A stretch of DNA of 64,000 nt from contig MU008160.1 in the NCBI GenBank assembly GCA_010909165.1, positions 1,488,001 to 1,552,000 on the forward strand. The letters run 5' to 3'. Below, one piece after another: positions 1-43,967 of this stretch; position 1 is the first letter of the stretch, and every line of letters begins with the position of its first letter. Source of the stretch: Anthoceros angustus (Eukaryota; Plantae; Anthocerotophyta). The position numbers and the translations under genes were made by a program. The notes under the pieces were generated by a model that worked only from the letters and a program-made list of their open reading frames with translations, was not told the origin of the DNA and searched no databases.

Positions 1-3000
1 GACCTGGCCAGCCTCTTGGACCCTGCGCAAGCGGGAGTTGGCATCTGTACCCTCGAACACATGGGAGCTTCTGTGGCCGGCACCGGCACCATGGCCGTCT
101 GTTCTCCTGCTTGTGCTGCAGTCATGTGGGCCCTGCATCAACAGGCAGCCGTGAGGGTACCGTTCTTCTTCTACCACGCCATGGGTTGCCAACAGAACCA
201 CACCGCTGTTTGCCAGCCCGTCCAGCACAGCTTTCTTGGTCATGTTCCGACCCACGCAGGGCTGGACGTTGAAGTACGAGGCCACAGTGATGGCTTCGTG
301 CAGCGAGAAGTCCAGCTGGGGCCAGCCCAGGCCCATGGGTTCTGGGTTGCCAGCTATGAAGGCAACCTGGCCCTTGCTGAGCTGCTTGCTTCGATGGAGT
401 GGCTCGACGGCGTGCATTCCTTGGGCAGGTAAGCTGACCGACTGCAGGGAAGAAACGTCGTCCACGAGACCCGGGAACTGCATCCTGGCCTGGAACTTGT
501 CCTGCCGCTGTAAGCATCTGTACAAAGTTGTGATGGAAGGGATGACAGCCACACCTCTGGTTGCTTGCAGTTGGACCAGGAACTTGCCCTTCCTCTCGTC
601 ATACAAAGCGGCAAAGGGCACCTGAGACAAGCACCCGTGCCCTGGTGCGAAAACGAGAGTGTCACAGCCCTCCAGGTCTGCCTCTATGAACTGCACCAGG
701 AGTGCGTGCAGAGTGGCCAAGGCTTTGATGGGCCTCCGGCTCCTCGTGTCTTCCTCATTCTGAATGTCAGTCCGAGCCTGGCTTATCAGTCCCTCCAGAC
801 TAGTTGTGGGTGACTCGCCTGCATCCTTAAACCAGGTTCTCAGGTGACAGATCGTGCAAAACTGGTTCACGAGCGCGAGGTTGGGAGATTCGGCTGATTG
901 TCTGATGACATAAATGTACAACAACCCCAGCCATGTGTTGTAGACATAGTGGATGATGGCAGTCTTGGGGCTTAGCGATTGTGCAGTGGCCCAGATTATG
1001 CTCTCCAACAAAGTGTCGCACTGGTCCAATGCCATGGGCTTGAAAAATGGTTCCTCCCCTCCTTTGATATGGATCTGGTGCAAGAGAAAGCGCACGTTGG
1101 CCCTTTCCGCCCAAATCAAGCCTCGCGTAGGATTTCGAAGGCCGTTGATCCACAAATCCTGCAGGAGCCAGTAGACCATCTCCATCTTCTGATCGAAAAA
1201 CAGAACCCAAGCTAGGGGTTTACTGTCTTGATAACAAGTCTCCCGTTGTTCCACAGCGGCAAGTACAGCAGCCTCCTCAGCCACCATAGCAGCCCTCACC
1301 CATTCCTGTCGCTCTTCAATTTCTGATGACTCAGCCCTCTCCATGTTCTGTTGCTCTTCAATTTCTGTTGACTCAGCCCTCTTCAATTTCTGTTGATCCC
1401 GTAGGACACGGGCTTTCTGCCGCAGGACAAGGGCTTGCTCGAATTTGGCCAGGACCAGGTAGACACCATCATTGGCTGCCAATGTTACTGCTTCCTCGGT
1501 ATAGGTCCATGCTGCTGCCGGATCCCCGAGCCTCAAGGCTGCTCTGGCCTGCAGCAAGCGCACCTGCAAACCAGACACAGTGTGACCAGTCATATCCTGC
1601 GACACTGTCGTCCCCAGCTCTGCATCGAGCTTTTCGTACTGTTTCAATCTCTCGAGAGCCAGGCACAAAATGACGCGCACATTCATCTCCAAGATCTTCG
1701 CCTTGTGGAAGGTCACCTCAGTGCTCTTAACCTTTTGAAGCGCTTTCAGTGCCTGCTGAGATTTCCTCTCGGCCATCTTCCAGTTACCATTCTTAATGTG
1801 GAGCCCAGCAGTCACCTTCATCAACACCAACTCATGGAAAAGTGGACCACGACCTGTTTCCACCTGATCCGTCCCAGCTAGTGCCTCCTTCATGTATTTA
1901 AGAATGGTTTCAGCCTGCTTGAGGTCGCCCATGTCCTCTGCTATAACTGCCTTCAAAAGGTTCCAACGATTCCATAGCAACCTCCCTTCCACCCTCCCTT
2001 CCAGAAGTTTGTCCACGTATGCATCCATTACATCCACCAACTCGTAGGCTGAAGACCATCTCCTGCAATCATGGTGATTATCGAGGAGAGACAGCATCCT
2101 CTCGACAATGCGCTCGGAAAGGGATTCATCTAGCCGCTGGGATGCTAACATGACATCCTTCATCATCAGAACGAATCTCTCGGAATCCCCAGCCCTGTGC
2201 CAGTACATTGCTGCTTGGGACTGCAACCAAGTCTTTGAAGGGGAGTCCCAAAACAGTGACTGCAGGAAGAGGACTTCAGCAGCAGAGCTGTAAGCAGCTG
2301 CACGATCATAGATGTCCAAAAGCAGCTGCAACGTATCCAATATCCGTGGATATATTTGTGCTGGCGGCGATCGCCGGTGGCTGTTAGCAAGCCAGAGGCC
2401 CAACTCCTCCTGTGCATTGGGCCTATCAGCTGGTTTGCCCAATATCATGACGCAAAGTGCGTAACACACAACATCCACGGAGTCTGCGTCTCTTGGAGAA
2501 GCCGGCTTCTGAGGGTAGCACATAGCAGCCAACTTGAATATGCATTCACAAAGAGCCCAGACCTTCACCGGTCCGGTATCGCCTTCAGATCCCTTCACTA
2601 CGGCAAACCAAAGCGCTCTTGCGGAGTGAGTTAGCATCCATGCGTACTCTTCACGCTTGAGCGCCGGTGCGTAGGCTTCAGGCACGAAATCCACATCACC
2701 TAGCCCTGCCCGCATAGAGATCTCCAGAGAGGGAGTCTCGAGTGCATCAGGCATGTGCAACCCTGCCAGCAAAGTCTCACCTAATCTGGATGCACACTCC
2801 GACTCCACAAATGCCTCGGCAACCTTGTAGTACGCATGGACACATGCGCATCTAGCGTCAGGTCCCTGAGGAACTGATTCCTCACATTCCACCACATCAC
2901 TGACTGGATGAGATTCATCGCTGCCAAGGATAAGGAATGGATAAAACGCGTGCCGGTCTGGGCAATCTGCAGGTACCCTGGGATCAATGGCATGGATCAT

Positions 3001-3552
3001 GAGGTACCCCAGACTCTCTGCGACCAGGCAGACTACGAACTGATGGAAGAAGCGGGAGCCCACACAGGCCTGCTCCACCTGGATAGCTCTAGAAAGGTAC
3101 AATTCGGCGGCTGCCCAGTCCCCTTTGGAAGCGTAAATCAGCCCCTTGAATCCTGCAACCCAGGCTTTTCCTTGCGGGAGGCTTTCAGATTCCGCCTGCA
3201 CCTGTAGCTCCACTTCTGCGCAAGCATCCAAAGCAATTTCGTGATAACACTCAAGGGCCTTCACCCCTGCCGCTGCAAGATTCATACAAACTCGCCGTCG
3301 GACAGCAACCTTTTCACAGCCATTTTCAGTCAGCCTGTACTCCTCAACCTTGTTCATCACGTCTTCAACAGTCAAGCACTCCCGCACAGGCATCTCCTCT
3401 AACAACCCCGGTGTGTGAAGAGTAGCCGCTCTCAATTGGCGGACAAAATACGGCGTGAATAGCTCATGATCATGCCGTGTTCCCGACCCATGGCCACTTG
3501 CCATCTGCACATTCTGCATTTCGTGCTCGAGGTACAAGATGGCTCCAGTCAT
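1..3552 (-). CDS. TPR-repeat + CHAT (caspase-like, clan CD) protease, paralog A; 3' end runs off the left edge of the window
   Basis: Manual translation: ATG at 3552 (MTGAILYLEHEMQNVQMASGHG...). No stop was found in the frame-checked stretches, and the frame is consistent at 3552, 3000, 1212 and 1, giving about 1184 codons in the window. It is absent from the ORF track because its stop lies outside the window. It is collinear with the 43968 ORF and contains WAERANVRFLLHQI and the CHAT His motif VLLATHG (His codon 181-183). Confidence 0.9.
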   Translation of the reverse strand, partial: MTGAILYLEHEMQNVQMASGHGSGTRHDHELFTPYFVRQLRAATLHTPGLLEEMPVRECLTVEDVMNKVEEYRLTENGCEKVAVRRRVCMNLAAAGVKALECYHEIALDACAEVELQVQAESESLPQGKAWVAGFKGLIYASKGDWAAAELYLSRAIQVEQACVGSRFFHQFVVCLVAESLGYLMIHAIDPRVPADCPDRHAFYPFLILGSDESHPVSDVVECEESVPQGPDARCACVHAYYKVAEAFVESECASRLGETLLAGLHMPDALETPSLEISMRAGLGDVDFVPEAYAPALKREEYAWMLTHSARALWFAVVKGSEGDTGPVKVWALCECIFKLAAMCYPQKPASPRDADSVDVVCYALCVMILGKPADRPNAQEELGLWLANSHRRSPPAQIYPRILDTLQLLLDIYDRAAAYSSAAEVLFLQSLFWDSPSKTWLQSQAAMYWHRAGDSERFVLMMKDVMLASQRLDESLSERIVERMLSLLDNHHDCRRWSSAYELVDVMDAYVDKLLEGRVEGRLLWNRWNLLKAVIAEDMGDLKQAETILKYMKEALAGTDQVETGRGPLFHELVLMKVTAGLHIKNGNWKMAERKSQQALKALQKVKSTEVTFHKAKILEMNVRVILCLALERLKQYEKLDAELGTTVSQDMTGHTVSGLQVRLLQARAALRLGDPAAAWTYTEEAVTLAANDGVYLVLAKFEQALVLRQKARVLRDQQKLKRAESTEIEEQQNMERAESSEIEERQEWVRAAMVAEEAAVLAAVEQRETCYQDSKPLAWVLFFDQKMEMVYWLLQDLWINGLRNPTRGLIWAERANVRFLLHQIHIKGGEEPFFKPMALDQCDTLLESIIWATAQSLSPKTAIIHYVYNTWLGLLYIYVIRQSAESPNLALVNQFCTICHLRTWFKDAGESPTTSLEGLISQARTDIQNEEDTRSRRPIKALATLHALLVQFIEADLEGCDTLVFAPGHGCLSQVPFAALYDERKGKFLVQLQATRGVAVIPSITTLYRCLQRQDKFQARMQFPGLVDDVSSLQSVSLPAQGMHAVEPLHRSKQLSKGQVAFIAGNPEPMGLGWPQLDFSLHEAITVASYFNVQPCVGRNMTKKAVLDGLANSGVVLLATHGVVEEERYPHGCLLMQGPHDCSTSRRTDGHGAGAGHRSSHVFEGTDANSRLRRVQEAGQV

Positions 3553-3725
3553 ATTCGAGCTCCTTGTCCACACTTCACCTGCATCAATTGCTCAAGTCCC
3601 AACCAGTCTGCATATTCCAGCGCTTTGTCCACACTTCACCTGCATCGACTGCTTAAGTCCCAACCCCAGTCATATTCCAGCTCTTTGTCCACACTTCACC
3701 TGCATCAATTGCTCAAGTCCCAACT
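3550..3725. repeat. Three ~60-bp tandem units overlapping the start codon of paralog A
   Basis: Units begin with catatt at 3550, 3611 and 3671 and contain ttgtccacacttcacctgcatc; seen directly. Confidence 0.9.
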
Positions 3726-4029
3726 GTGAGGGAATGGAGAATGCAGACCTATCTGAAGAGGATGTCGAATGTGTCCCGATCACGCAGAGTCTCTTTGCCT
3801 GAAGCTTTCCTCATCAGTATTTTATTTCTGCCTGCACCAGCGTTGTCTGCACAGCACAACTCCACGTCACGGAGCCGTACATCAACCCAGTCCCCCGGTA
3901 TTTTACTTTTGTTCACGCAAGAAGAATCCCGGTCAAAGACGGCGGAGGACAAGTGGTTTTTGCGGACGGTATCTTCTGCACATGCCACAGTTTCCGGAAA
4001 CACAACGGTGAAGAAAGGCGTCAGGGAGC
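3553..4029. promoter_or_regulatory. Putative shared bidirectional promoter/5' UTR region between TPR-CHAT A and the RPW8-like gene
   Basis: 477 bp between two divergent ATGs. Promoter function is inferred from geometry only. Confidence 0.4.
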
Positions 4030-5440
4030 ATGGCAGATGTTACAGCAGGTCTGGTAGGCTATGGAGTGTCCAAAGCGTTGGATCGGGTGCTGGATTATGT
4101 AGGCAAAGCGTTGAAATTGTTTGACTACTGCGAGGATCTGCAAACTCTTCTACGCTGGGTCAAACCGGGGGTTGCATTTGCGGAGGCAAAGAAGTCCTCA
4201 ACGGCACTTGAAGCATCGGGCGAGGCAGTGGAGAACTGGCTGGAAGCCTTGGGCTCTCTGTTGAAGGACGCAGAACAAGCGCTTACCCGAGCTCTAAAAT
4301 CTGTTCCTAAGAAGTCTTTCAACCTGGTGAAGCGGAAGAAGCATTCAGACCGGATCCGAAAGCTCACAGAACAGATTAGAAAAGTAGGGGATGGCTGCCC
4401 GTTCGCAATCTTGTCTGTAGTCACAGACATCAAGAGTGATACTACAGCCATCAAGTGTGATACTACAGCCATCAAGAGTGATGCTACAGCCATCAAGAGT
4501 GATACTACAGCCATCATCAGCCATCTCAGAATCCAGCGTTTGTCGCAGCAGGGGAAGGCTGCTCCCCAGCACCCATTGGTCCAGAAATTGAAGGAACTGA
4601 GGAGAAGCACCAGACGTGACGAGAGGTGCCCCGTGGGGCTGAAGGTAGCAGACACGCATACCCGGCAGTTTCACGTTCCTGGAGAGAGTTTAGGTTCTGG
4701 ATCTGCCGATCAGGAGGAAGAGGCCAACCATCGAGGTAAGGTTGTGAAGGGAGGTATCGAAGTGAACAATGCCACAAAGCTCCGACTCACCATGGAACCT
4801 AAATTTGGAGGAGACTGGTTCTTCTACATTTTGTTTCTGGACCACTTCGAAGGCACCCCGTCTATCTACTTCCCGGAGGAATCGGGTCACGACAACACGC
4901 TTGTCAGGCAAGTGGAGGGGAGAGACAGGCCTGTTTGCAAATCTGGCTCTCTTCTTAAGTACTTTCTTTCTTTCTGTCTTTCTGTCTGAGGAGAACTACA
5001 TCTCATTTCAAGGAGTTGTTCAGGTCCGAAAGAGTCTTCCCAAACAATGACGACTATGACGATGATCCAGAGACCATGAAACTGGAGAAGCAGCAACGGC
5101 CCCTCAGATGCTTGCGAGCGAGTTACCTTGTACCTTGTTGTGGTCGACACTCGCGTGGAACCAGGTACGGTATGTCATAACATGTTGAGGAACATTGTTT
5201 TGTTAAGACGGGAAAATGTAGTGGACTGCAGTGGAAGAATGCACACCGGTTGTACTCATAGCTCCTACTTCTGCAGAGGATCCCTCCGGAAGCATCACCC
5301 TTGAAGATGTGGAGAGGCACTTGCAATCTCCTGCTCTAGACGCTATCATCAAGCATTGGATTTTTGACATACGGCCTCCGCGGTTTTGAGGCTCACAATG
5401 GAGGAGTAGTTTGGACTGCGATCAATCATGGACAGTCGAA
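4030..5440 (+). CDS. RPW8-like (four-helix-bundle) domain protein with heptad repeats and a DUF4384-like C-terminal domain; predicted exons 4030-4958, 5024-5164, 5277-~5440
   Basis: N-terminus MADVTAGLVGYGVSKALDRVLDYV...LGSLLKDAEQAL...SFNLVKRKKHSDRIRKLTEQI...VVTDIK follows the RPW8 pattern (hydrophobic MADA-like helix 1; L..LL..A..L; NL.K+.+Y..+I+.L; DIK). Predicted GT-AG introns are 4959-5023 and 5165-5276. The frame across exons 2-3 is restored with the consensus of the three copies, because copy 1 has a 2-nt deletion near 5085 and an extra T near 5361. The 3' boundary against the LINE is uncertain. Confidence 0.72.
4428..4515 (+). repeat. Coding 21-bp x4 tandem repeat (IKSDTTA heptads)
   Basis: catcaagagtgatactacagc and variants, four times in frame directly after the RPW8-like domain. 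Confidence 0.95.
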
Positions 5441-6154
5441 TTGTCTCGGTGTTCACAGGACTATTGTCGACGAGGCTCGATTTCAAAAGAAACATGTCTA
5501 TTGTTGTTTTGTAGACTTCAACATACTCTTCAACTCTGTGCCTTGGGACAAGCTCTTTGATAGGTTGAATTCTTTGAATATGCCTCCAAAGCTCTAGCAT
5601 GCTGCCATTCTTTTGTATTCTTGTGTCTGTACTCATGAAGACTCTCTGGCCTGGCTGCTCACCAGATTCTCATCGAGCTTGACGTGAGAGAGGGTGATAC
5701 TCATGAAGACTCCTGGCCTGGCTGCTCACCAGATTCTCATCGAGCTTGACGTGAGAGAGGTGATACTCATGAAGACTCCTGGCGTGGCTGCTCACCAGAT
5801 TCTCATCGAGCTTGACGTGAGAGGGTGACCCATTATCTTCTAATCTCTTTGATTTCTATATTGATGAACTTGAGGAGTGGCTTCTTGCAACAGGTGATAG
5901 CGGTGCGAGCCTGATTATTCCTTAACAGTATTCCGATCCTACTTTATGCTAATGATATTGTCCTTTTCTCCTATATGGCTGAAGCGTGATGTGCTCTCTG
6001 ACTTTTGCAATGCCTAGGGTGTTAATCTTCGCAAGACAAAGATCATGAGTTACAATTCTAGGGACTACAACGACATGAGTAAATTCTACTATCAAGAAGA
6101 GGAGGTGGAAATGGTTCACTCTTATACTTACCTTGGAGTCACAATTTTCGATCC
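5440..6154 (+). mobile_element. Degenerate non-LTR retrotransposon (LINE) reverse transcriptase fragment
   Basis: Translates with frameshifts to HRTIVDEARFQKKHVYCCFVDF..FNSVPWDKLF, REGDPLSSNLFDFYIDEL, LLYANDIVLF (YADD-like), KTKIM and VHSYTYLG. It is cut at 6155 by an LTR. Copies lie at ~29367-30080 (-) and ~31470-32190 (+). Confidence 0.78.
5630..5830. repeat. ~62-bp x3 tandem repeat inside the LINE fragment
   Basis: actcatgaagactc(t)ctggc(c/g)tggctgctcaccagattctcatcgagcttgacgtgagagagggtgat three times. Confidence 0.9.
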
Positions 6155-7949
6155 TGTCATGCCATGTGACACTAATTTTTGCACTTGGGTTTAGTGTTTG
6201 ATTAGCATTAATTAATGTAGTTACTTATCTTTAAGTTAATAATTAGCATTAATTAATCTAAAGCACTTATGTTAATCAAATATTGATTAGTATTAATTAA
6301 ACATGGTTAGCAATAGCTAAGTGGATAAGCTCTAGAAAATGCTCAAAGATATTCCTTGCATTATAGTGTATTCTTAGAATATTTAGGCGTATCTTGATGT
6401 CGATAGGATATCTTGGGAATATACCAAATGCCAAGGCTAGTATATAGACCCTTTAGAGGACAGCTCGGATCGCTTGTCCCCCAAATATACAACGCAAGAG
6501 TGTTGTGAGGAGGCCAAAAGCTATGGCAGAAGCGATGTGTGAGGAATTTGCGCGTTGTTCGTGGGAGAATGTGTTTTGTGCCATACAACGTTACCACTTC
6601 TATCATGATCCGTGTGCACGCTAGATAGCATAGAATTGATAAGATTGCTGGGCTTGGTATCTTTGGCGATGCTAAGCCGTGTCGAACAGTGTGCTGGCGA
6701 TCTTGGCGGCTAGCGCTTTAAGCAGTAGGCAAGGACCTCTAAGTGTGCAAAGCCCAAGTCAAGGAGAGGAGGAGGGTGTGAGCATGGTAAGGTGACACTA
6801 ATTTAGGAAGCAGTGGCAGTCTCTAAGTGGTGTTTTGCATTACGTCAGATTTTAATAATTGAAATTATGCATTTATTAGATATTTTTAGGGCTATTCGTT
6901 TTTAACTTCATAGATATATTGAAGGGCTAAAATTTTTAGGGATAAAATTAATTTATTTGATATATTAGCAGATTAAGTCTTGCTATATATGCTAGGAACA
7001 ATTTATTATCCAAACTCGTAAGTGACCAAATGATGAAGCGAGGCGGAAGCAGCGGGATGTATTGACCTTTTAGGGTGATAATAAGGTTATCCACTTCCAT
7101 CGTGCTCTAATGTTGAGACTCACAAGCATTCGTTTTGTGCATGCATCACACCGAATCTGAGCTCAAACTTGGGCCGGCGATGAGGGCGGTTGGCGGCCAT
7201 GAGTCCCTACATGGCTTCGCTAGAGCTAAGGTCGACAAGGGCAATAGGGCGTGATAAGGGCGGACTATGCTAAGTCGCTGAGTGAACTAGGTTCTTACGG
7301 CGGTTGGGAGCTTGGTGCAGGCGATGGCGATGGCTTTGTGCGGCTGCTGTTTGGCCACGTCGGTGCTTTCCCGAACGAGGAGCTTTGTGGTGCGGCCAAA
7401 AGGCAGTGGGTGCGCGCGGCGAACGCGATAGGCAGCCAGCATCTTCAGAGGTTTTTTGTGTGAGCGTGTGTGAGGGAGGGCGTGTGCGACTATTGCTATT
7501 GCACCGTGAGGTGCAGACACTTGCTTGAAGCCTGTTTGGTTTGTTTGGAGACTGTGCTGGGTTCACTATAAGGCTCCTTAACTTGTGCTCAACGTTTCTG
7601 GTAACAGCTCCCAGACCAATCCCGACAGTTTGACAACAAGCTAAGATTCTTTACATAGGTGAGGGAGGAAGCCGTCCGTGAGGGAGGGAAGCTGGCCGTG
7701 AGGGAGGGAAACAAATTCTGGGAAACCCATCAATTGTTCTATCCCCTTTCTTTCTAGTTAGTATTGAGTCTGACGGCTATCTCTGCACTCATTTTCCTCT
7801 GTACAGACACGAGCACATGACTGATTTGTGTGTGCTTGTGGTTGTTTGTCTTTCCTGTACTGCTGTCATCATGGGGAGGTGGTGGCACTGCTCATTTACG
7901 CGCTTGGACTATTAACCTGACCTGTGTAAAGGTGAAATGCTCCTTTCAC

Positions 7950-10180
7950 GCTACTTTCCTTCGCTGTTGCTACATGTGTATTACCATTTAAGTGTCCTGG
8001 TTCTGAGGAATGTGGTGGGTTCAGGTCAAGTTGAGGACACCATGTCACTAGCAACGAGCAGGGTGAAGGCTCAGCAGCGTGTGGCGGGAGATCTTCTTGG
8101 CGATAATTCCGGTGGTGTGTCAAGCGCCTCCTGTGCAACCAAGATGGACAAGAACGCTGGGCGCCTGCTGAAGGCTAGGTTGGATAGATTTGCAAAAGTG
8201 AATGCGGCTCTGCAAGAACACGACATTCCTGAAAAATTCAGGGGGGAGCATTGGTGCCGCACTGGATATGGAATTGTCAACTCGGATATGAGCGTCGGAT
8301 GTCGAACTACAGTTGGACTAAAGGAGGCTATTGAGGTGAAGATGAGATCAAGAGGCATTTTGAGGATGTCACTAATGGACATGATGGATACCTCTTGGGG
8401 ATCACGGACCTCTTGTCGACATAGAGGGACGACGTGCCTTCCCAACTCTGGAGAGCTCCGAGATTGCTATGAGGAACGCCTTGTGGTGTTTCCTGGCTCC
8501 CGATGTGAGTAGAACACTCTTCCAAATCAACCTCGCTCTGCGTCATCACCTGCCACCACAACAAGTTGCGAAGAATCGTTTGTATAATCTCGAAGGGACT
8601 TCCACAACTGTAATTTCTTCTCCAACGATCGCCTTATCCGCTTCCTCTTCTCAACCTAAATAGTACAGGACCAATTCACACGCCAAGCTTCTTCTCGATT
8701 AGGAACCCAAGTGCCACAAACCATGGCACCCTCTGCGATGCAACAGCTGTGGGAGCCCAGGGAAGCACAGAAGGCCATGAAGAAGGACGGACCTCCGGCT
8801 GCAAAGAAGGTAGAAGAGGAGGCCGGCAAGAAGGGAGACGAGCAGTCTCCAAATCAGATTGCTACAGTGGCGGTAAGAAAAGAATCAGCAAGCCAGCCTA
8901 TGTGTACTGAGCCATGGGCACCAAAGGTTGTCATGGATGAGGTCTGTGGAAAAATTCGTGCAGAGTTGGAAGCTTGTGCTGCAGAGGAGGCTGTTTTGTC
9001 AAAAGATGGGGAGGAGGCACTCTTGGATTTGGGCAACACCAAGGTCCAGCTTGCCGACATGGTCATGAACAGTGGAGGGCTTGACGAGAGAGTGTTCGCG
9101 AGACTTTGTACAGCATTCATAATTCTGTGCTTGACAAAACTAAGTATTCTGAGGGTGTTTCTGACCAGTTAAAGGAGAAAATAATTGTGAGGGACAAGCT
9201 CCGTGAGACCTTGGCCGGCCTTGAAAACATGAAGGATGTTCTCCGGCGTGTTCAACAACTGGGCACAGAACATGGATCACCTACGTGGGTGTCGGCTCCC
9301 TGCCTCTCCCGCCAAGTCATGCCCCCGTCTGTAACGGCGTGTAGTGTTTGTACGCGGTAAGTATGGATTCTTCACAACACACGGGACACCACCGTGGTAA
9401 GTGTGGATTCTTCACAACACACGGGACGTGGTGTCCGCACTGATGTCTGAAGTAGCATGGCCTTGCCCCTCCTCATCCACGGTATTCGGCCGGAGGAGTT
9501 TCTCCTGGTGGATGTAGGCCTCATACATGATAGTTCCCCAATCCGGCTTGGCTCCTCACGAAATCTTCCACAAGAATTGAAGGAAATTGGTGCTGAAATA
9601 GGAAGTGCGTTGGTAATTCACCAATCCCAAGACGATCTTGGCAAAGAGCCTCCACTTCAGCTCCTTGATGCTGTCCGTCTTCCTGCCGTTCTTGGCGTGG
9701 GCTTTCACTCCCCCATCCATCATGTCTAAGACCTCCTGTGGAATTTCCGAAATGGAAATCCTCTTCCCTCCGTTCGTCCTCTCGAGGAGAGCGATTCCTG
9801 AGCTCTCCTCCTCCGGTCTCCCATACACCTGGCGAATGCTTGAGGCCCAACAACAACGGCCGGGCCGAGCATTCCGAAGGCGGCAGGGCGCCTCGATTGA
9901 TGGAGGTTGATGTAACACTCCTCAATCAACTCCAAATTGGTGTAGGCCTATTGACGCCCATACACCCATCTCAATTGGATGTTCTCCTCTTACGCCCATT
10001 GCTGAAATCCACCAAGTCTCGGGATTGAGTTGCCACAAACATGTAAATTGGGGCATCTCGAAATCTCCTCGCTGCCTCCGGCTGCTGCCTTCTTGCCTTT
10101 TCCTCCTCCGAGTCGAGCCCTTGGCGCCGCCTTCCTTGCCCTTAGTTTCCGAGTCATGGCGCCTTCTCGCTCTCCAAGCG
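7950..10180 (-). pseudogene. Frameshifted antisense accessory ORF of the LTR element (plant-transposon-protein-like domain plus charged coiled-coil region)
   Basis: Peptides KGKGKAAPAKG...GGDFEMPQF; LELIEECYINL; WRLFAKIVLGLVNYQRNSYFSTNFLQFLWKISRGAKPDWGTIMYEAY (best preserved in copy 3, 35255-36152), followed by E/K/L-rich segments. Split across frames in all three copies. Confidence 0.55.
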
Positions 10181-13110
10181 CTTCCAAGGAAACTGTCTGT
10201 TCAAAGGGTTTCTCCTGTCAAAGGGGTTTTGGAAAAATCCCAACCCTATTTTGCCGGAAGAAGTTGGTTTGGTTTTGTTGGTTTTGTAGGTGTTCATCCA
10301 TCGGTTTCGCATTCTGGCCCACCACTTCGTCGAGTCATTTACACGCCGGGCGCCTTTATACTCGTGTTCATGGCGATTTAGTCGGTGTGATGAAGGGCCA
10401 GTGACCTCATTGTTCCATAATTTCGCCATGTCCGTAGTTTCGTGATTTTGTGTGGTTTTGTATGTTTTTATATACCAGAGGGCCTAGGCGCATAAGTGCG
10501 CCTAAACAACATATGTGCAAACTTGTGCATGCACTGTGCAAAAAGAACGCGAAAAATGATCTTCTAATGGGGAAGCATGTCCTTTTGGCGGTCTGAGGAT
10601 GTGCCGGAACTCCCGACAAAATAACAAGTAGCAGACATCGGCGGAGGTTCACCTAGACCACTCTTATATACCTATCCTATGCCCTAATGCGACGAAGAAC
10701 ACCCTATCCCCTTTTTATTCTTTACGGTGTTTCCGTCTCTTTCGGCGGTGACCTAGTACCGGGTTATCATCAAACATGCTAGGGGCCCACTGGTGAACAA
10801 GTGCATGCACCGTGGCGGCGCACCACGGCAGGGGCCCGGATGTGCACACCAGGAGGAGGTGCGCGCACCCAGCGCGCACCAGGTGGCAGCGCGCGGCACC
10901 GTGGCAGTGCGCGCACTGTGGCAGGATGTGCCCAGTGACTTGTGCGCCGCACTGGGCAAGGAGGCGCAAGTGTGCACACAAGCACACGCACCCAAGGTCA
11001 AGAAGGGAGCATGAACCCAAATGGTTCATGCCTCCTAGTGCATTCCGCATTGGGTTCATCCAAAGAAAAAAGAGCAAAAGTCTTAAAACTTAAAACCCCT
11101 TAAAAATTACAAAAAGTCCAGTTTTTGAGGCAAGTGTGACTTGCTCTAAAATTTGACAAATTTTTGCATTTTTTGTATTTTTTGATATTTTGTTGTTTTA
11201 AAGGGTTCCTTTCGACGCTTTTCAACCTTTTTGTGCAGCACCCTAGTGTGGATATGTTCTTATCTTTACTTAACCCTCATCTTTTTCTAGTAGTTAAAAC
11301 TTTGAACTAGTAGTGAGAACCTTTTGCATCTTTTGAATCTTGAGGCGTTTGGCGTGGGCCCGACTCTAAGTCGGACCATGCCACTCTCATTCTCGCACTA
11401 GACGTGGATCAAGAGCATCGAGGCCAAAGAAGATATTATTGTCCCAATGTCTAAGGAACAAAGTCCTGAAAATTCTGGAGAGTATAGTCATAGGATTGAC
11501 TAGTATGAATGAAAGGTAGGTGCGAAACAAGTTTGATGGACTAGAATTAAAGCAAGCCCTAAAAACTCTAAATATTTAGTACGTCAACACCGCAATGATT
11601 GCCGATGTTGAGACTGCTTAGATGGGCGCGATAAGTTTGCGCAATTTTGTGTCTTTGAAAAAAGCCGAACGAGAATGGGACTTTAGGTTTTGCCACTTTG
11701 CAATCTACATCTCAAATAACGTGTATCAAAAAATTATTATTCAAAAGGTTGTAACATGTCTGCAGAGAAATATCAAAAAGCCCGATTATAATGCGGATTT
11801 TTCAAGTGCAAAAGGGGTCCGGTCAAGTCCGGTAGGCAAAAGGGTGTGGAGAAACCCCTTTCTAAACAGACAAGAGTAAATTACTTCCCAATTCCAGACA
11901 CTAGCAACCTCGGGCTTAGCCTCAAACGCCTCTCCTCACAAGAAACCCCAACCGAGACACAATTCCACGTTAGTCGGTTGGTGCTTCCGATTCTTAATTG
12001 CTCGCCACCTCCTTCCAGGCCAAGGCGCCGCCAGCTTGGGCTTGTGTCCTTCTCGCCCTCCCTCTGTGGCGGACACCCTCGATGTCTGCCTCACGGCGTC
12101 TTCCTCGATGCTTCCTAGCCACGCAAGGCCGTCTTCTCACGCTCCGAATTGGTCCGTCCTCTCCTCTACCTCCTTCTCCTTTTCTTCCTTCTCTTCTTGC
12201 CGCCTTGAGCTAGGGCTTCCTCCCAATCTTCAGCTCGCGCCACTGTTTCCTTCACGCTTTCCAGCGATGGCGACGATGACCTTCCTTCTCTTTTCCTCTT
12301 CCTCTACGCTCCATTGATCCTCACGAAGTGAAGATGTCTCGTCAAGAGAGAGAGTTGGTGCTGAGCGCACTTTGCCTCTTTGGATTGCACACCGGAAGCC
12401 TCTCAACCTAGATTTGATTAAGCTCCTAAAATACCTAGCCACTAAGTTGCCTATTTCCTGTCCTATTTTCAGCCCCTAATTGATTACCTTCTAATTAATC
12501 CTATTTATTCATTCCCTATTGGTAGGCATATATAGTGGATATACCCTTATCCTAAGTTCTCTTTTTAGTCGAGATGTTGTCGACCTACGCGGTGATGACC
12601 ATCATGTGAGTCCCCTCCCGACCTCTCCGTGGGGTGGCGACCTCACTAGTCTGACCCACCGCCCCTTCCACTTCTTACGCCTCACAAAAGTCATTTTGAC
12701 CCGCTTTTGTCCCTAAGCATCATCTTTACACGCCCATCGACACCTAACAACTCCAACTCTGGAGAATCGAAAAAATTTGCATGTCTCTTCCCACTCGTTT
12801 CTAGCCAAAAAATCGGTCCGTTCCACGGTAGCTCGTTTAGGCGGGTTGCCCAAACTTTTCCCACACACTTGTACACGCTGGGTTCCCGAGGAGGCTATCT
12901 TGGGCGAAGCCTTGTGCGAGGCGTGCCTCACCGGACATGTACTTGGGTGCTTACAGAGTGTGGGGGAGCAAGAGGTCGAATGAGGTGACATCATGGAGAT
13001 AAAAAAGGTATGTTTATTATCACCTTGTAGGGGACACAATATGATTGGTTTGTACCTATACTTGTTGTTTGTTGAGGAAGTGCTTATATAAATTCAAGCA
13101 CTTAAGTACA

Positions 13111-13737
13111 TGTCATGCGTGACACTAATCTTTGCACTTGGGTTTAGTGTTTGATTAGTATTAATTAACACTAATTACTTATCTTTAAGTAAATAAGTAG
13201 TGTTAATTAATCTAAATCACTTATGTTAATTAAGAGTGGATTCTTGTTAATTAAACATGGTTAGCAATACCTAAGTGGATAAGCTCAAGTAATATGCTTT
13301 AGCGTATTCATTGCATATTATAGTGTATTCTTAGGATGCAATAGCTATGGCTAAGTTCTAGTAATGTGCTTTAGCATATTCCTTGCATATTATCTTGTAT
13401 TCTTAGGATGTTTTCGCATATGCTAACGCAATAGGATATCTTAGAATATGCCGATGCCAAGGGCTAGTATATAGACCCTTTCATAGAGGACAAGCTCAAA
13501 TCATAGCTTGTCCTCTAGATATGCTAATGCAAGAGTGTTGTGAGGAGGCCAAAGCTATGACTCCGAGGCGATGTGTGAGGAATTTGGCGTTGTTCTTGTG
13601 GGGAGTGTGTTCGTACGGCGATGCGAGCTACCCTCCTATTGTCATTGGTTTGCACCTATACTGCATATTAGATTAGTTTTGCTAGGTTGTTTGTTGAGGA
13701 AGTGCTTATATGGATTCAAGTGCTTACTTGATGCACA
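13111..13737 (+). repeat. Right-hand LTR (~630 bp)
   Basis: TGTC...CA termini; the first ~420 bp are similar to 6155-6580. Confidence 0.65.
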
Positions 13738-13739
13738 AT

Positions 13740-16700
13740 GGAAACACTCTTTCAATAGAAGGCGAAGGAAATGAAGAGATGATCCGCTTGCAACCTGATT
13801 TCTTGACCTTCTGTGGCCGGCTTCAAAGGCAACAGAAGGCGATACCTTGAGGTGGCTTCACGTGGTCTGACCACGCCCATCATCGAGACTTGGTCACGGA
13901 TGAGATGCAAGTCGGCCCGAGCGCGCAATGCACGAAAAGTGTACCGCTCTCTACAAGCCATGTAGTTGCTTTTGCTAACTATAGTGGACATGGCGTGCGA
14001 ATGGCATTGTGGGTGGCGATCGTTGACTCCATGGGGGCAGCAGGGATGAATCCTAGAGTCGTCGAGGGTAAAGCGCAATTGTAGGTAAGAAGGAAAAGCC
14101 ACAGTGCTGGACTAGGCAAAGACGGAATCATATCGTGCAGTGAAAGAGGTCGGTGCGATGTGAAAACGTCGTATGCATGGACGAGCCCGAAGCCAAGCAC
14201 TTGCACCTTTCCCGGAATAAGAAACAGGATAATATTTGAAGGGGCTTAATATACATGAAGGGCTTTTGGGCCTATTCTGAGATAAGGGGTTTCGATGGGG
14301 CCTTGGACATAGCATTTTGGGCACATCCAAAAAAATCTGAAAATTAGGGCGCAATTGATTAGAGTCGAGGTATTTGCCTGCGGAAACCCTTTTAAGGTTC
14401 TACAGTTGGACGCCCATCCTTGTTTATGCTGTTTTGATGCCCATGTTCGGTCACCAGTTCTGGAGGTATATAATTAGAAAAATATAAAAATATACAGCAC
14501 GAGTAATAGGTTTCAGTGCTCATACGGTTCAAAAGTCATAGGCACTTGCTGCCATGGGCATGATGCTCGTGTTAACGGAGAAGTGGACCTTAACGAAGTA
14601 GACCGTTTCAAGAGGCAATAGGGCAATTGGATGCGGGCATGCCGGCGCTAGTGGGTCCACAAGTAGGTATGTGCGATTCACTAGAAATGTCCGGTGCCTA
14701 AGTACACACATGTAAGGGCGTGGGCATGCCGGGGATAAAGCATTTATGATTTGAATACTGGATAAGGGCGCGAGCATGCCAGTGCCTTTGGAGGGACTTT
14801 GAGGGGATAAAGGGCATGAGGGAGCATAAGGGCACATGAGTGCTGGCATGCCGGCACCCTCATTTCAACATATACTTTATGCTTCTCTACTTGATACAAA
14901 GGAAGCTGATGAAGCGATGAGATATGAGGTCTATGGGTAGGAGGTCTTGGGTTCAAACCTTTAACAATATAGTATATGTTTTGAAGTTGATTAGCTGGCC
15001 ATTTTTTAAGGCCGATATACAAGCGCCCATTAAATGTATTTTTTTCTAGTATTTAGGAATAGGTAATATGGTTTAAAATCAGAGATAAAAATCCGAGGTT
15101 ACTAGTTTGAGTAGTCTAAGTTTTTAAGTTGATTAGCGCCATTTTTTAAGGCCGCCTTTTAAATGTAATTTTTCCGGTGTTTGGAATAGGTAATAGGGTT
15201 TGAAATGAAAGATAAAAATTTGAGGTTACTAGTTCGATAATGCTTCTTTTTTTGGCTAGCATCGGCATCTGCCGGTTGTCATGATTCAAACTCATGAAAG
15301 AAATGCATCTAGGGCATGAACCTTCTTCTATATCAAAATGGCAAAGGATTGATGGATGTGCAAAGCCGAGATGCCGGTGCTTGCAAGCAAGCATATGGTC
15401 TAATGTAGGTCACCATAATGTGCATTGGTGCACGATAAGTGGTTATAAGCCCTAGCGAGGATAAGTGGTTATAAGCCCTAGCGGTAATGTGGATGCACAC
15501 CGACGCTCACAAAAACCTAGCTAATGGAGGGAGCATAAGGGCATAGGGTGCTAGCATATTGGCGCATTTGTATATATTATTATGCATTATAAAGTTTTAT
15601 TATCTCTTAGAGTTGGTAAAGTGGTTATAAACTTGGCTAAGAGTCATAAGTCATGAGTTCGAGATCCAAATTGAGTTTTAAACTAGTTAAGTTGAGTTTC
15701 ATGTAGAGCACATGCCCATGCCCTTTCAAGTAAGTAAAAGCCGTGGTAGAGCCCGGCATGCAGCACCACACACCAGACTCAGCCTTCTACCGTAAAACAC
15801 ATAAAGATTCCAAATCTACTAGCTAGTGCTCACCGCCTTATATCAAAAATTGCCTAAAATCATGATTTAGTTCTGTACATGTGCGGTTTGTGGAAGCGGC
15901 TTTAATTACGGAAGAGGGTTTGTATGTGTGTCAAAGATTATCATATGAGCCGAGCTCCTGTGGACACGAGGATGGAGGCATCCGAGAGGACCGACTAAAA
16001 GCTCGCCAAGTTGCTTGATCAACGATACCGCAACCCCTAAATCCATCGGAGAGGAAGGTGGTGGAAGGGGAAGTCCGCATATCCATTGATAACATGTCCC
16101 TGGCACGCCATAAGAACATGTCGTAAAGGATAAAGCGGATGCTAAAGGCGGATAGGGCCCAGGTAAATGTTGTCGGGAAGATATCTCCATCGGGAGCAAA
16201 CCAAGACCCATGCCAGAGGGACGCCTGGGTCGATCGCAAGACACTCAAAGCCCTCGCCTCGTTATGTCTCCCAAGGTGTCCATGATCTTCTGTCAAACCC
16301 CATGGCCGGGACGTGAGACGGAGGCCACGATAAAATAACAAGGCACCTCGCAAAGCAAGAGGAAAGCATACCACTTGAGCATCCTCCGACAAATATAGGT
16401 CTTTGATGTGGGAGAGGTGTTGCCCGAGCCTAGTTCAAGAAGCTCTCGAAAGTCGGGGAATTGAAGGGACCCCAAAGTCCGTAGAACCAAGGCCGAGGGA
16501 CCCCAAAGTCCAGAGACCCAAGGCGCAATCTCCCTTGAGAAACTACAAAGTAGGAAAGATCCCGATGGAGACCGGACACTTGGACAACTTGACCTTTAAG
16601 CCCACGCAGGAGAGCTCATAAGAGAAGAGCTCAAGGTCCCGCTTGACCTTGTCCCGGGCCCGAGGATGTGAGAGTCGCCCGTGAAGGGGAAGACACGTGC

Positions 16701-17200
16701 GTTGGGAGGTGGCCTTGGAGAACCTTGTATGAGCGATGACAAAGAGAGCACCACCCAAAGGGTCGCTTTGCTTGATACGTATGGCGATTCCAAAATGGAA
16801 TAGCAAAACCCGATAAAGCACCCCAAGACTCCACGGCGTCCGAGCTTGAAGATCACCCGGAATTGGTGTTGAAGGCATTTTCCACATCCACCTTCTTCAA
16901 GACCACTCACTCCGGATGAGTTTGGAGGCATACCTTTACTTCGAACACCACGAACTTGCAATACCCCGGTAGGAATGCCGAATTAAAGGGGATTGAAATG
17001 CTGCCGGAGAGGAATGGCAGTCCAATAACTTATAAGGTGCAGGGCTCCACTTGCTACAAAATCAGGTGAGATAAGGTGCAGGGCTCCACTTGCTACAAAA
17101 TCAGGTGAGATCTTTCTGCCTGCGACTAAGATATTTATGCAGCTTCAGCTCCCCGTACTGCGCTGAGTGCGCTCACCCCATGGCTTCTCGATGCAACTGG
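13740..17200 (-). mobile_element. CRE-clade (restriction-like endonuclease) non-LTR retrotransposon, degenerate and interrupted
   Basis: RT motifs PL.FGIPTPG, HPE.VVLKKVDVENAFN, Q(S/G)DPLGGALF, SLADDSHILG and GLKVKLSKC. Linker QASL.VASGGAGLLP and SGKGASAWLRARP. Zinc knuckle H...CPHG.QRIATHNAIRDV. RLE core RADLYLIRGDQVSMADVVVTDP...AAALKVKKYSGL...HLFISFG (clearest in copy 3, 39699-40307 and 42941-43339). Confidence 0.8.
14240..15890. mobile_element. Unclassified ~1.65-kb non-coding insertion splitting the CRE-like ORF
   Basis: CRE protein motifs stop at ~14240 and resume at ~15900. The intervening DNA has recurring gcatgccggc motifs and short tandem duplications (e.g. gataagtggttataagccctagc x2); no clear TIR or TSD. 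Confidence 0.4.
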
Positions 17201-17532
17201 CCAAGGTACGACCATGTCAGTGCAGTGCACTCCACATTATATGTACATTTCTTTCTTTTCTTTCTTCTTGCGGAATAAAATATTGGGGGTAGGTTGACCG
17301 CAATGCGCAGTGCTCCCTGACCTGACGTGGAGTTTGCTGCAACTTGACTTGACCCGTGCAACAACGCGGGACATGAAGGAAATAAGATACGAATGAGGAA
17401 AGCTTCATGCAAACAGACTCTGCGTGATGCGCACACATTCAACACCTGCTTCAGACAGATACGCATTTCCATTTCCACTTCCTTAGGGTTGGGACTTTAG
17501 CAATTGATGCTGATGATTGAAGTGTCTGCAGT

Positions 17533-17879
17533 ATGACTGGAGCCATGGAGGGCCTCGAGCACGAGGTGCAGAATCTGCAGGTGGCAAGTGGCCATGGGTC
17601 GGGAAGACAGCATGATCATGAGCAACTCACGCAGTATTTTACCCACCAATTGAGAGCGGCTACTCTTCAGACACCGGGGTTGTTAGACGAGGTGCCTGTG
17701 GGCGACTGCTTGACTGTTGAAGACGTGATGAGCAAGGTGGAGGTACAGGCAGACTGAAAATGGTTTTGTAAAGGTTGCTGTACGATGGCGAGCTTGTATG
17801 AATCTTGCAGCGGCAGGTTGAAGGCCCTCGAGGGTTGTCACGAAATTGCTTTGGATGCTTGCACAGAAGTGGAGCTACA
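17533..17879 (+). pseudogene. 5' fragment of TPR-CHAT B, truncated at the fold-back junction (mirror copy at 17875-18213, minus)
   Basis: MTGAMEGLEHEVQNLQ... is identical to 43968 except a 2-nt deletion (gaggtac vs gaggagtac); it ends at the hairpin centre. Confidence 0.85.
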
Positions 17880-18559: not shown

Positions 18560-21500
18560 ACCTACCCCAATATTTTATTCCGCAAGAAGAAAGAAAAGAA
18601 AGAAATGTACATATAATGTGGAGTGCACTGCACTGACATGGTCGTACCTTGGCCAGTTGCATCGAGAAGCCATGGGGTGAGCGCACTCAGCGCAGTACGG
18701 GGAGCTGAAGCTGCATAAATATCTTAGTCGCAGGCAGAAAGATCTCACCTGATTTTGTAGCAAGTGGAGCCCTGCACCTTATCTCACCTGATTTTGTAGC
18801 AAGTGGAGCCCTGCACCTTATAAGTTATTGGACTGCCATTCCCTCTCCGGCAGCATTTCAATCCCCTTTAATTCGGCATTCCCACTCCGGGGTATTGCAA
18901 GTTCGTGGTGTTCGAAGTAAAGGTATGCCTCCAAACTCATCCGGAGTGAGTGGTCTTGAAGAAGGTGGAAAATGCCTTCAACACTTGGTGATCTTCAAGG
19001 TTTCAAGGTTGCTCTCCATTTTGGCCACCTCCCCAGTCTTTTGGTGTGTCAGCACCCTTGTTGTGAACGACTCTCACATCCTCGGGCACAGGGACAAGGT
19101 CAAGCGGGACCTTGAGCTCTTCTCTTATGAGCTCTCCTGCGTGGGCTTAAAAGGTCAAGTTGTCCAAGTGCTGTATCTGGTCTCCATCGGGGATCTTTCC
19201 TACTTTGTAGTTTCCTGAAGGGGAGATTGCTTCGGCCTTGGGTCTACAGACTTTGGGGGTCCCTCGGCCTTGGTTCTACGGACTTTGGGGGTCCCCTTCA
19301 ATTCCCCTGACTTTGTCGAGAGCTTCTTGAACTAGGCTCTGGGGCAACACCTCTCCCACATCAAAGACCTATATTTGTCGGAGGATGCTCAAGTGGTATG
19401 CTTTCCTCTTGCTTTGCGAGGTGCCTTGTTATTTTATCGTGGCCTCCGTCTCACGTCCCGGCCATGGGGTTTGACAGAAGATCATGGACACCTTGGGAGA
19501 CATAACGAGGCGAGGGCTTTGAGTGTCTTGCGATCGACCCAGGCGTCCCTCTGGCATGGGTCTTGGTTTGCTCCCGATGGAGATATCTTCCCGACAACAT
19601 TTACCTGGGCCCTATCCCGCCTTTAGCATCCGCTTTATCCTTTACGACATGTTCTTATGGCGTGCCAGGGACATGTTATCAATGGATATGCGGACTTCCC
19701 CTTCCACCACCTTCCTCTCCGATGGATTTAGGGGTTGCGGTATCGTTGATCAAGCAACTTGGCGAGCTTTTAGTCGGTCCTCTCGGATGCCTCCATCCTC
19801 GTGTCCACAGGGAGCTCGGCTCATATGATAATCTTTGACACACATACAAACCCTCTTTCGCTTCCACAAACCGCACATGTACAGAACTAAATCATGATTT
19901 TAGGCAATTTTGATATAAGGCGGTGAGCACTAGCTAGTAGATTTGGAATCTTTATGTGTTTTACGGTAGAAGGCTGAGTCTGGTGTGTGGTGCTGCATGC
20001 CGGGCTCTACCACGGCTTTTACTTACTTGAAAGGGCATGGGCATGTGCTCTACATGAAACTCAACTTAACTAGTTTAAAACTCAATTTGGATCTCGAACT
20101 CATGACTTATGACTCTTAGCCAAGTTTATAACCACTTTACCAACTCTAAGAGATAATAAAACTTTATAATGCATAATAATATATACAAATGCGCCAATAT
20201 GCTAGCACCCTATGCCCTTATGCTCCCCTCCATTAGCTAGGTTTTTTGTGAGCGTCGGTGTGCATCCACATTACCGCTAGGGCTTATAACCACTTATCCT
20301 CGCTAGGGCTTATAACCACTTATCGTGCACCAATGCACATTATGGTGACCTACATTAGACCATATGCTTGCTTGCAAGCACCGGCATCTCGGCTTTGCAC
20401 ATCCATCAATCCTTTGCCATTTTGATATAGAAGAAGGTTCATGCCCTAGATGCATTTCTTTCATGAGTTTGAATCATGACAACCGGCAGATGCCGATGCT
20501 AGCCAAAAAAAGAAGCATTATCGAACTAGTAACCTCAAATTTTATCTTTCATTTCAAACCCTATTACCTATTCCAAACACCGGAAAAATTACATTTAAAA
20601 GGCGGCCTTAAAAATGGCGCTAATCAACTTAAAAACTTAGACTACTCAAACTAGTAACCTCGGATTTTTATCTCTGATTTTAAACCATATTACCTATTCC
20701 CTAAATACTAGAAAAAAATACATTTAATGGGCGCTTGTATATCGGCCTTAAAAAATGGCCAGCTAATCAACTTCAAAACATATACTATATTGTTAAAGGT
20801 TTGAACCCAAGACCTCCTACCCATAGACCTCATATCTCATCGCTTCATCAGCTTCCTTTGTATCAAGTAGAAGCATAAAGTATATGTTGAAATGAGGGTG
20901 CCGGCATGCCAGCACTCATGTGCCCTTATGCTCCCTCATGCCCTTTATCCCCTCAAAGTCCCTCCAAAGGCACTGGCATGCTCGCGCCCTTATCCAGTAT
21001 TCAAATCATAAATGCTTTATCCCCGGCATGCCCACGCCCATGTGTACTTAGGCACCGGACATTTCTAGTGAATCGCACATACCTACTTGTGGACCCACTA
21101 GCGCCGGCATGCCCGCATCCAATTGCCCTATTGCCTCTTGAAACGGTCTACTTCTCCGTTAAGGTCCACTTCGTTAACACGAGCATCATGCCCATGGCAG
21201 CAAGTGCCTATGACTTTTGAACCGTATGAGCACTGAAACCTATTACTCGTGCTGTATATTTTTTATATTTTTCTAATTATATACCTCCAGAACTGGTGAC
21301 CGAACATGGGCATCAAAACAGCATAAACAAGGATGGGCGTCCAACTGTAGAACCTTAAAAGGGTTTCCGCAGGCAAATACCTCGACTCTAATCAATTATG
21401 CGGCCCTAATTTTCAGATTTTTTTGGATGTGCCCAAAATGCTATGTCCAAGGCCCCATCGAAACCCCTTATCTCAGAATAGGCCCAAAAGCCCTTCATGT

Positions 21501-21978
21501 ATATTAAGCCCTTCAAATATTATCCTTGCTTATTCCGGAAAGGTGCAAGTGCCCAGCCGGGCTCGTCCATGCATCGCGTTTCACCTCTTTCACGATATGA
21601 TTCCGTCTTTGCCTAGTCCAGCACTGTGGCTTTTCCCTTCTTACCTACAATTGCGCTTTACCCTCGACGGCGACTCCCAGGATTCATCCTCATGGAGTCA
21701 ACGATCGCCACCCACAATGCCATTCGCGTCACTATAGTTAGCAAAAGCAACTACATGGCTTGTAGAGAGCGGTACACTTTTCGTGCATTGCGCGCTCGGG
21801 CCGACTTGCATCTCATCCGTGACCAAGTCTCGATGATGGGCGTGGTCAGACCACGTGAAGCCACCTCAAGGTATCGCCTTCTGTTGCCTTTGAAGCCGGC
21901 CACAGAAGGTCAAGAAATCAGGTTGCAAGCGGATCATCTCTTCATTTCCTTCGCCTTCTATTGAAAGAGTGTTTCCAT
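18560..21978 (+). mobile_element. CRE-like element, copy 2
   Basis: Inverted duplicate of 13740-17200. Confidence 0.75.
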
Positions 21979-43640: not shown

Positions 43641-43967
43641 GTACGACCATGTCAGTGCAGTGCACTCCACATTATATGTACATTTCTTTCTTTTCTTTCT
43701 TCTTGCGGAATAAAATATTGGGGGTAGGTTGACCGCAATGCGCAGTGCTCCCTGACCTGACGTGGAGTTTGCTGCAACTTGACTTGACCCGTGCAACAAC
43801 GCGGGACATGAAGGAAATAAGATACGAATGAGGAAAGCTTCATGCAAACAGACTCTGCGTGATGCGCACACATTCAACACCTGCTTCAGACAGATACGCA
43901 TTTCCATTTCCACTTCCTTAGGGTTGGGACTTTAGCAATTGATGCTGATGATTGAAGTGTCTGCAGT

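Follow-up and report, generated by a model that had tools for sequence, protein, structure and literature searches.

Coiled-coil (CC) and RPW8-type four-helix bundles of plants serve as the executioner heads of nucleotide-binding leucine-rich repeat (NLR) receptors or occur as stand-alone RPW8/HR proteins, and to our knowledge they are switched on by NLR oligomerisation and not by proteolysis. Death effectors released by a protease are established in animals, fungi, and bacteria. The locus described here lies in a 64,000-nucleotide stretch of the genome of Anthoceros angustus (Anthocerotophyta), positions 1,488,001 to 1,552,000 of contig MU008160.1 in assembly GCA_010909165.1 (hereafter the window). 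In it, a gene for a caspase-fold protease with a CHAT domain and helical repeats resembling tetratricopeptide repeats (TPR), CHAT-a, stands head to head with a partner gene whose product is predicted to join a CC/RPW8-like bundle to an immunoglobulin (Ig)-like beta-sandwich. With a second gene, CHAT-b, farther along the window, the locus is a lineage-restricted, fast-evolving one that carries two TPR-like/CHAT protease genes. A preliminary description of the window had proposed that the protease cleaves the partner and frees a death-inducing bundle, and four described systems provide the background against which this proposal can be judged.

The closest bacterial parallel is Craspase, in which the substrate of the TPR-CHAT protease Csx29 is Csx30, a protein with a flexible linker, and in which one group of Csx30 proteins ends in a DUF4384 domain (Kato et al.). 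The likeness lies in a protease with TPR-type and CHAT regions beside a two-domain protein joined by a linker, and in DUF4384, the C-terminal domain of some Csx30 proteins and the best match of the C-terminal domain here. Unlike Craspase, the Anthoceros locus is eukaryotic (plant nuclear, with spliced genes and plant-type neighbours) and lacks both the CRISPR effector and the guide RNA; it would at most work like a Craspase and is not a member of that system. The freed N-terminal part of Csx30 sequesters a sigma factor, whereas the corresponding part here resembles a plant CC/RPW8 bundle. Sequence similarity to the solved Csx29 chains is not detectable, and homology of the C-terminal domain to DUF4384 is a lead only.

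Among fungi, 19% of gasdermin genes adjoin CHAT protease genes, and the Podospora TPR-CHAT protein Q2L-6 processes its neighbour Q1-6 (Clavé et al., PMC8851545). These HET-Q2-like/HET-Q1-like clusters resemble the present locus in that a eukaryotic TPR-CHAT protease gene stands beside another gene; in the fungal clusters that neighbour is a membrane-targeting death protein restrained by its C-terminal part and processed by the CHAT domain (PMC8851545). The fungal executor is a gasdermin, which forms beta pores, whereas a four-helix bundle is predicted here, and the fungal clusters recur in hundreds of species while the pair described here has been seen in one lineage.

The RPW8/HR proteins, the CC-R domains of NRG1 and ADR1, and Rx-type CC domains share with the partner protein an N-terminal four-helix bundle of ~130 amino acids (aa) and gave its best structural matches, yet the partner has neither NB-ARC nor LRR. 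A beta-sandwich joined to RPW8, CC-R, or CC domains was not reported in the literature searched. CC domains of non-flowering plants, expressed alone, trigger cell death (PMC11218826). Finally, bacterial and fungal caspases and orthocaspases with a C-terminal DUF4384 also tie a similar beta-sandwich to a caspase-fold protease; in those proteins a single chain holds both, whereas here two divergent genes encode them and a plant CC-type bundle is what the sandwich is joined to.

The divergent gene pair

One frame on the minus strand of the window is free of stops for 1197 codons from 3591 to the window start, with its first ATG at 3552, and the partner gene starts on the plus strand at ATG 4030. 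The preliminary description had placed two divergent starts 477 bp apart, and this layout holds; the 477-bp intergenic region is probably a shared promoter. The same divergent pair occurs on a related contig, L001, where the two ATGs are ~456 bp apart (480 bp if measured to the start of the called open reading frame (ORF)). Within the promoter region of the window a 60-bp unit stands three times in tandem at 3545-3724; the unit is single-copy in L001, and the three-copy form recurs in a duplicated fragment at 18204-18532. The 5′ untranslated region (UTR) of the partner gene contains a short upstream ORF at 3982-4011 (ATG plus nine codons, then TGA), and in L001, which is one base shorter there, this upstream ATG shares the reading frame of the main start.

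Transcripts were taken from one public RNA run (X1), whose contigs were placed on positions 1-6000 of the window. One contig of 1444 nt joins 3922-4907, 5024-5164, 5277-5561, and 5664 onward, with GT..AG borders on the intron between exons 2 and 3. The spliced coding sequence (CDS) of the partner gene, 4030-5389 with two coding introns, encodes 376 aa, given two letters, GA, that the RNA carries after 5084. A single-exon partner ORF of 319 aa was considered and rejected, because the RNA joints and the colinearity with two homologs, P0002 and P0003 (see below), give three coding exons; that ORF owes its final 27 residues to read-through into an intron. Also rejected was an origin of the C-terminal domain as transposon read-through, an idea suggested by the entry of the ORF into a repeat at 4642. 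The domain is also present in L001, P0002, and P0003, and the repeat is thus explained as a segmental copy into which the 3′ part of the partner gene was taken up.

The GA is found in the RNA, in both partial copies of the partner gene within the window (block copies B and C in Table 1), and in L001. Over 3922-4903 the RNA contig shows no difference from the window, and where copies B and C differ in exon 3 it follows the window. Taken with the small insertions and deletions (indels) that make up most differences between the copies, these points make the absence of GA from the assembled exon probably an assembly error, read as an unpolished indel in a repeat to which reads map in several places, and a null allele the less likely alternative. 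Relative to the window, the contigs of this run have insertions of 1-2 bp at 5084, 5702, 5711, and 5818, which suggests local deletion-type assembly errors, and no differences from it over 991-3073, 3138-3593, and 3922-4903.

CHAT-a is covered over 1-354 and 560-3593 by RNA contigs that do not differ from it. The listed contigs end at 3593 and resume at 3922, and the uncovered interval of 3594-3921 is as expected for two divergent transcripts. Depth in this run is 14 for CHAT-a, 21 for the partner contig, and 57-67 for CHAT-b variants; the variant letters at 1-600 all equal those of CHAT-b, at a depth of 57-67. As to co-expression, which the preliminary description had named as a check, both genes of the pair are transcribed at similar depth in this single run.

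The preliminary description had also called the adjacent TPR-CHAT gene apparently intact, which the window does not bear out. CHAT-a is truncated by the window edge at residue 1184, upstream of the expected catalytic Cys, and only H1124 (in LLATHG) is visible; the residues H1126 and C1209 that the preliminary description had cited both belong to its paralog. The paralog itself was found, at 43968-48074 on the plus strand. CHAT-b is 60% identical to CHAT-a across the whole visible length of the latter and contains H1126 (LLATHG) and C1209 (LSTCESG), the residues expected of the His-Cys dyad. The Pfam CHAT model (PF12770) matches it with 101.2 bits (E 9.1e-29), well past the cut-off of 24. CHAT-a has no Pfam CHAT match of its own; the visible part of its domain is ~85-90% identical to that of CHAT-b. 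An in-frame intron of 129 nt is predicted from sequence at 47731-47859 in CHAT-b and would yield a protein of ~1326 aa.

The helical repeats of both proteins are harder to name. The best Pfam TPR match of CHAT-b, TPR_12, scores 26.1 bits and does not reach its cut-off of 30.1, and TPR_8 in CHAT-a scores 18.1 bits against a cut-off of 25.7, whereas language-model features group CHAT-b with TPR-CHAT clusters at 0.95-0.96. Of the earlier label TPR-CHAT, the CHAT half therefore stands through the Pfam match of CHAT-b, the TPR half has sub-threshold Pfam scores and a feature match, and TPR-like helical repeats is the defensible wording for both genes. CHAT-b and L001 share a TPR-like unit of 46 residues, the one that carries the best TPR_12 match of CHAT-b; it is missing from CHAT-a after residue 477, and CHAT-a has a Glu/Gln-rich insertion of 35 residues near residue 714. 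When positions 1-3552 and 43968-47525 are compared, indels and a ratio of nonsynonymous to synonymous substitution rates (dN/dS) of ~1 are concentrated in the helical-repeat region. A search for CHAT-b homologs returned only a weak bacterial match, P0006, whose gene neighbourhood was uninformative; a sequence search of CHAT-b against solved structures gave no match, and no exact counterpart of the ORFs of the window turned up on look-up.

Predicted architecture of the partner protein

Homologs of the partner protein are few. When residues 1-135 were run with HMMER against the full set of 1.84 billion cluster representatives, four true relatives emerged: P0001, which is encoded on L001 and is 72% identical; P0002, a 370-aa transcript product; P0003 from Pteridium aquilinum (349 aa); and P0005 from Diphasiastrum complanatum, which consists of the N-terminal domain only, without the beta domain. 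In a collection of 5.8 billion proteins only P0001 and P0002 were found, and the fern homologs are known as transcripts only. P0002 and P0003 align with the spliced model without a break in order up to its final residues; identity in the N-terminal domain is 37-45%, and the C-terminal motif is common to all. At the level of fold, the models point to a protein made of a CC/RPW8-like four-helix bundle, a variable linker of heptads, and an Ig-like beta-sandwich whose best match is DUF4384.

The N-terminal ~135 aa were modelled with AlphaFold2 (AF2) from an alignment of five sequences and form four long helices packed as a bundle, with a predicted local distance difference test score (pLDDT) of 70. 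The best match in the PDB is the CC-R domain of NRG1.1 (template-modelling score (TM) 0.58/0.66-0.73; VIA Z 11.4 over 108/109 residues), followed by the CC domains of NRC2 (Z 10.9) and Rx (Z 10.3). The top 17 matches among Swiss-Prot models are all plant RPW8 or CC N-termini (the Arabidopsis RPW8/HR proteins HR1-3 and RPW8.2, ADR1, NRG1, and the CC domains of CC-type NLRs), and each aligns at its own N-terminus. Language-model features of the domain score 0.93 with Rx_N, 0.80 with RPW8, and 0.78 with MLKL_N.

Sequence profiles are less decisive. The Pfam RPW8 model (PF05659, cut-off 30.4 bits) has no match in the window protein and stays below threshold in P0002, P0003, and P0005 (17.9, 16.2, and 12.2 bits; E 0.0025, 0.0086, and 0.14). 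Rx_N (PF18052, cut-off 27.7) is likewise sub-threshold, at 14.1-14.3 bits in the window protein (E 0.04-0.05) and 19.9 bits in P0001 (E 8e-4). A search of solved structures with the N-domain profile gave helical noise only, the best being apolipophorin III at E 0.025. The RPW8-like N-terminus of the preliminary description is thus supported at fold level by the AF2 model and its PDB and Swiss-Prot matches, while the Pfam cut-offs of RPW8 and Rx_N are not reached, and the domain is best described as a predicted bundle of the plant-NLR CC/RPW8 type.

Between the two domains lies a linker containing a 21-nt repeat that encodes heptads, a segment that is shorter or absent in homologs. For the C-terminal domain, 83 of the 100 nearest clusters in a feature search carry DUF4384, with a best score of 0.88, and the top Foldseek matches are DUF4384 proteins and the C-terminal domains of caspases and Peptidase C14 proteins (E 6e-4 to 1e-2). 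The Pfam DUF4384 model (PF14326) does not match the domain even at E 5, PDB matches are generic Ig-like sandwiches, and the profile of the domain found nothing meaningful among solved structures. Assignment to DUF4384, resting on features and a predicted fold, is a lead and not a demonstration.

A possible protease-gated executioner and its alternatives

The best single mechanism for the pair is release of an executioner by the protease, a tentative reading held at somewhat less than even probability and built on a circumstantial link between the two genes. The beta-sandwich would be the module by which the CHAT protease recognises or holds its partner, and it would keep the bundle inactive. 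Once the helical-repeat region of the protease is triggered, the CHAT domain would cut the variable linker or a disordered insert of the sandwich, and the released bundle could oligomerise at the membrane, like CC, CC-R, RPW8, and MLKL bundles, with NLR-independent death or a defence output as the outcome. The logic would match the cleavage of Csx30 by Csx29, and that of adjacent gasdermins by the CHAT or caspase-like proteases of fungi and bacteria. A functional link is supported by the DUF4384-like character of the C-terminal domain, since DUF4384 occurs in caspase fusions and as the C-terminal domain of Csx30 proteins, and by the retention of the pair in L001.

If the CHAT protease does free a CC/RPW8-like bundle, the logic of protease-released death would extend to the plant kingdom, plant caspase-fold proteases would gain a concrete death substrate, and the widespread, uncharacterised DUF4384 would gain a testable role as a protease-recognition module. 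A wider proposal, which must be regarded as unlikely, is that seed-free plants hold an NLR-independent, protease-gated death switch in which CHAT recognises a DUF4384-like domain and cuts off a bundle that kills or signals at the membrane. Such a switch would be a plant counterpart of Csx29-Csx30 and of the protease-gasdermin pairs, in which the recognition unit may be ancient and the effector head swapped. No link between CHAT or DUF4384 and RPW8 or CC domains in plants was found in the literature searched. Even without a mechanism, the combination of a CC domain with a DUF4384-like domain is an architecture unreported in the searched literature that mentions DUF4384, in a very small family.

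Several observations weigh against release of an executioner. Synonymous divergence (dS) between L001 and the window is 0.22-0.34, as between close relatives or duplicates; both pairs probably go back by duplication to one ancestral pair, so that L001 is not an independent case and the linkage has effectively been seen once. On L001 the CHAT homolog, 49-57% identical, is open for 807 codons, while the partner gene is interrupted by a TGA in frame after FHVP and other sequence takes the place of the end of its beta domain. The N-domain homolog of Diphasiastrum has no CHAT gene within 10 kb. As to the conserved neighbourhoods that the preliminary description had asked for, the pair recurs in L001 and was not seen at the Diphasiastrum locus. 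CHAT-b lacks an adjacent partner gene of its own; copy C of the block forms its upstream flank, with the intact partner gene at a distance of ~39 kb in the assembly. The dN/dS ratio reaches 0.80 in the bundle and 1.03 in the TPR-like region, compared with 0.48 in the CHAT domain; such high values fit immune-type diversification but relaxed constraint as well. To these are added the quality of the structural evidence, since Z values near 11 are common among helical bundles, the model of the C-terminal domain is poor (a beta-sandwich with pLDDT 50 and fold matches at TM ~0.4), and no Pfam model of RPW8, Rx_N, TPR, or DUF4384 scores above its cut-off. The frame of the partner gene is also broken as assembled, owing to the missing GA in exon 2. 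Just downstream of the truncated partner gene on L001, a Ty3-type retrotransposon gag with a zinc knuckle occupies 4390-5799 on the minus strand, and it may explain the loss of the 3′ end.

Several of these observations also favour two unlinked neighbours, an explanation nearly as probable as release of an executioner. The genes would be lineage-specific, fast-evolving, and active in separate pathways, would share a divergent promoter by chance, and would have been copied together to L001 by segmental duplication. The single independent occurrence, the lone open CHAT gene on L001, and the Diphasiastrum homolog all favour this account, as does the abundance of segmental rearrangement in the region. 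Against it stand the recurrent and independent tie of DUF4384-like domains to caspase-fold proteases, including as part of substrates of a TPR-CHAT protease, and the transcription of both genes in the same sample at similar depth.

Less probable again is an adaptor or regulator role for the partner, whose sandwich would bind the CHAT protease while its bundle brought the protease to a membrane or an oligomer, or restrained it, the real substrates lying elsewhere. DUF4384-like domains do occur as accessory domains fused to caspases and not only in substrates, and CC domains also act as interaction modules, as in the binding of RanGAP2 by the CC domain of Rx, which is among the structural matches of the bundle. 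The closest parallels that have been studied experimentally are cleavage-release systems, however.

A decaying or misassembled locus, with the partner gene a pseudogene by its 2-bp frameshift, the family drifting, and the architecture a relic, would account for the missing GA, the stop codon in L001, and dN/dS values of 0.8-1.0, but it is improbable, because an RNA contig that matches the window over 3922-4903 and in exon 3 nevertheless has the GA, copies B and C and L001 have it too, indel-dominated differences between copies are typical of long reads left unpolished where a repeat draws multiple mappings, the CHAT ORFs are open for at least 1184 and for 1369 codons, and full-length homologs persist in ferns.

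The 13-kb block and neighbouring genes

Self-comparison of the window with blastn shows a ~13-kb unit three times within 4642-44317, in direct, inverted, and direct orientation (Table 1). Its left breakpoint falls in codon 205 of the partner gene and its right breakpoint in codon 117 of CHAT, so that what the copies carry of the partner gene is its 3′ part without a promoter, and of CHAT its 5′ part.

Table 1. Coordinates of the main features of the locus within the window.
Feature	Position	Strand	Description
CHAT-a	1..3552	-	partial CDS, 1184 codons; TPR-like helical region and N-terminal two thirds of CHAT domain
Divergent intergenic region	3553..4029	.	477 bp; aligns with intergenic region of L001
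Partner gene, exon 1	3922..4907	+	CDS from ATG 4030; predicted four-helix bundle (4030-4434), heptad linker, start of beta-sandwich
21-nt tandem repeat	4423..4516	+	4.5 copies; TAIKSDT-type heptads; inter-domain linker
Block copy A	4642..17879	+	starts in partner codon 205; ends with CHAT upstream region and first 117 CHAT codons
Intron 1	4908..5023	+	GC..AG, 116 nt; RNA joint 4903>5020, 5 ambiguous letters
Exon 2	5024..5164	+	middle of beta-sandwich; with GA of the RNA, frame colinear with P0002 and P0003
Exon 3	5277..5561	+	end of CDS, stop 5387-5389 (...FDIRPPRF), then 3′UTR
Reverse-transcriptase fragment	5340..5594	+	overlaps 3′UTR; Pfam RVT_1 E 5.6e-4, below cut-off
UTR intron	5562-5663	+	GT..AG
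5′ CHAT fragment and intergenic sequence	17870-18532	.	A/B junction region
Block copy B	19068..30683	-	inverted; joined to copy A by palindrome centred near 17875
Block copy C	30673..44317	+	promoterless 3′ partner fragment from codon 205, through to full CHAT-b
CHAT-b	43968..48074	+	complete TPR-like/CHAT gene; 1369 codons read straight through

The preliminary description had the two CHAT genes separated only by transposon DNA. This is only partly so. One weak remnant of that kind was recognised, the RVT_1 fragment at 5340-5594, which was the sole transposon-derived match among ten long open frames scanned (the block being searched in part), whereas the separating DNA also holds the 13-kb block in three copies with fragments of both genes. 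Over 4642-5700 nearly all differences among the three copies are indels of 1-2 bp, and across the whole 13 kb copies A and C differ by 445 gap openings and 454 mismatches. Indels that are about as frequent as mismatches between the copies look like the product of long-read sequence that was left unpolished.

Either a genuine fold-back rearrangement or the assembly itself may have produced the triplication. An artefact from a missed adapter would fit the near-perfect palindrome at the A/B junction but not the offset of 178 bp at the B/C junction (30673-30683). In a DNA run of the same sample, one of four sampled junction words was found, and the sequence there is indel-rich. Whatever the status of the triplication, the divergent pair is unaffected, since the RNA spans the junction at 4642. 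This DNA run (X3, from the same sample as X1) comprises only ~98 million contig letters, which suggests a small genome of ~100 Mb.

Beyond CHAT-b, three long open frames lie on the minus strand. They encode a PD40/DPPIV_N beta-propeller protein at 50986-53367, a hybrid histidine kinase with PAS, HisKA, HATPase, and receiver domains at 53890-56340, and a PI3/PI4-kinase of the PI4K-gamma type with a ubiquitin-like domain at 60630-62861. These three genes are ordinary plant-type neighbours.

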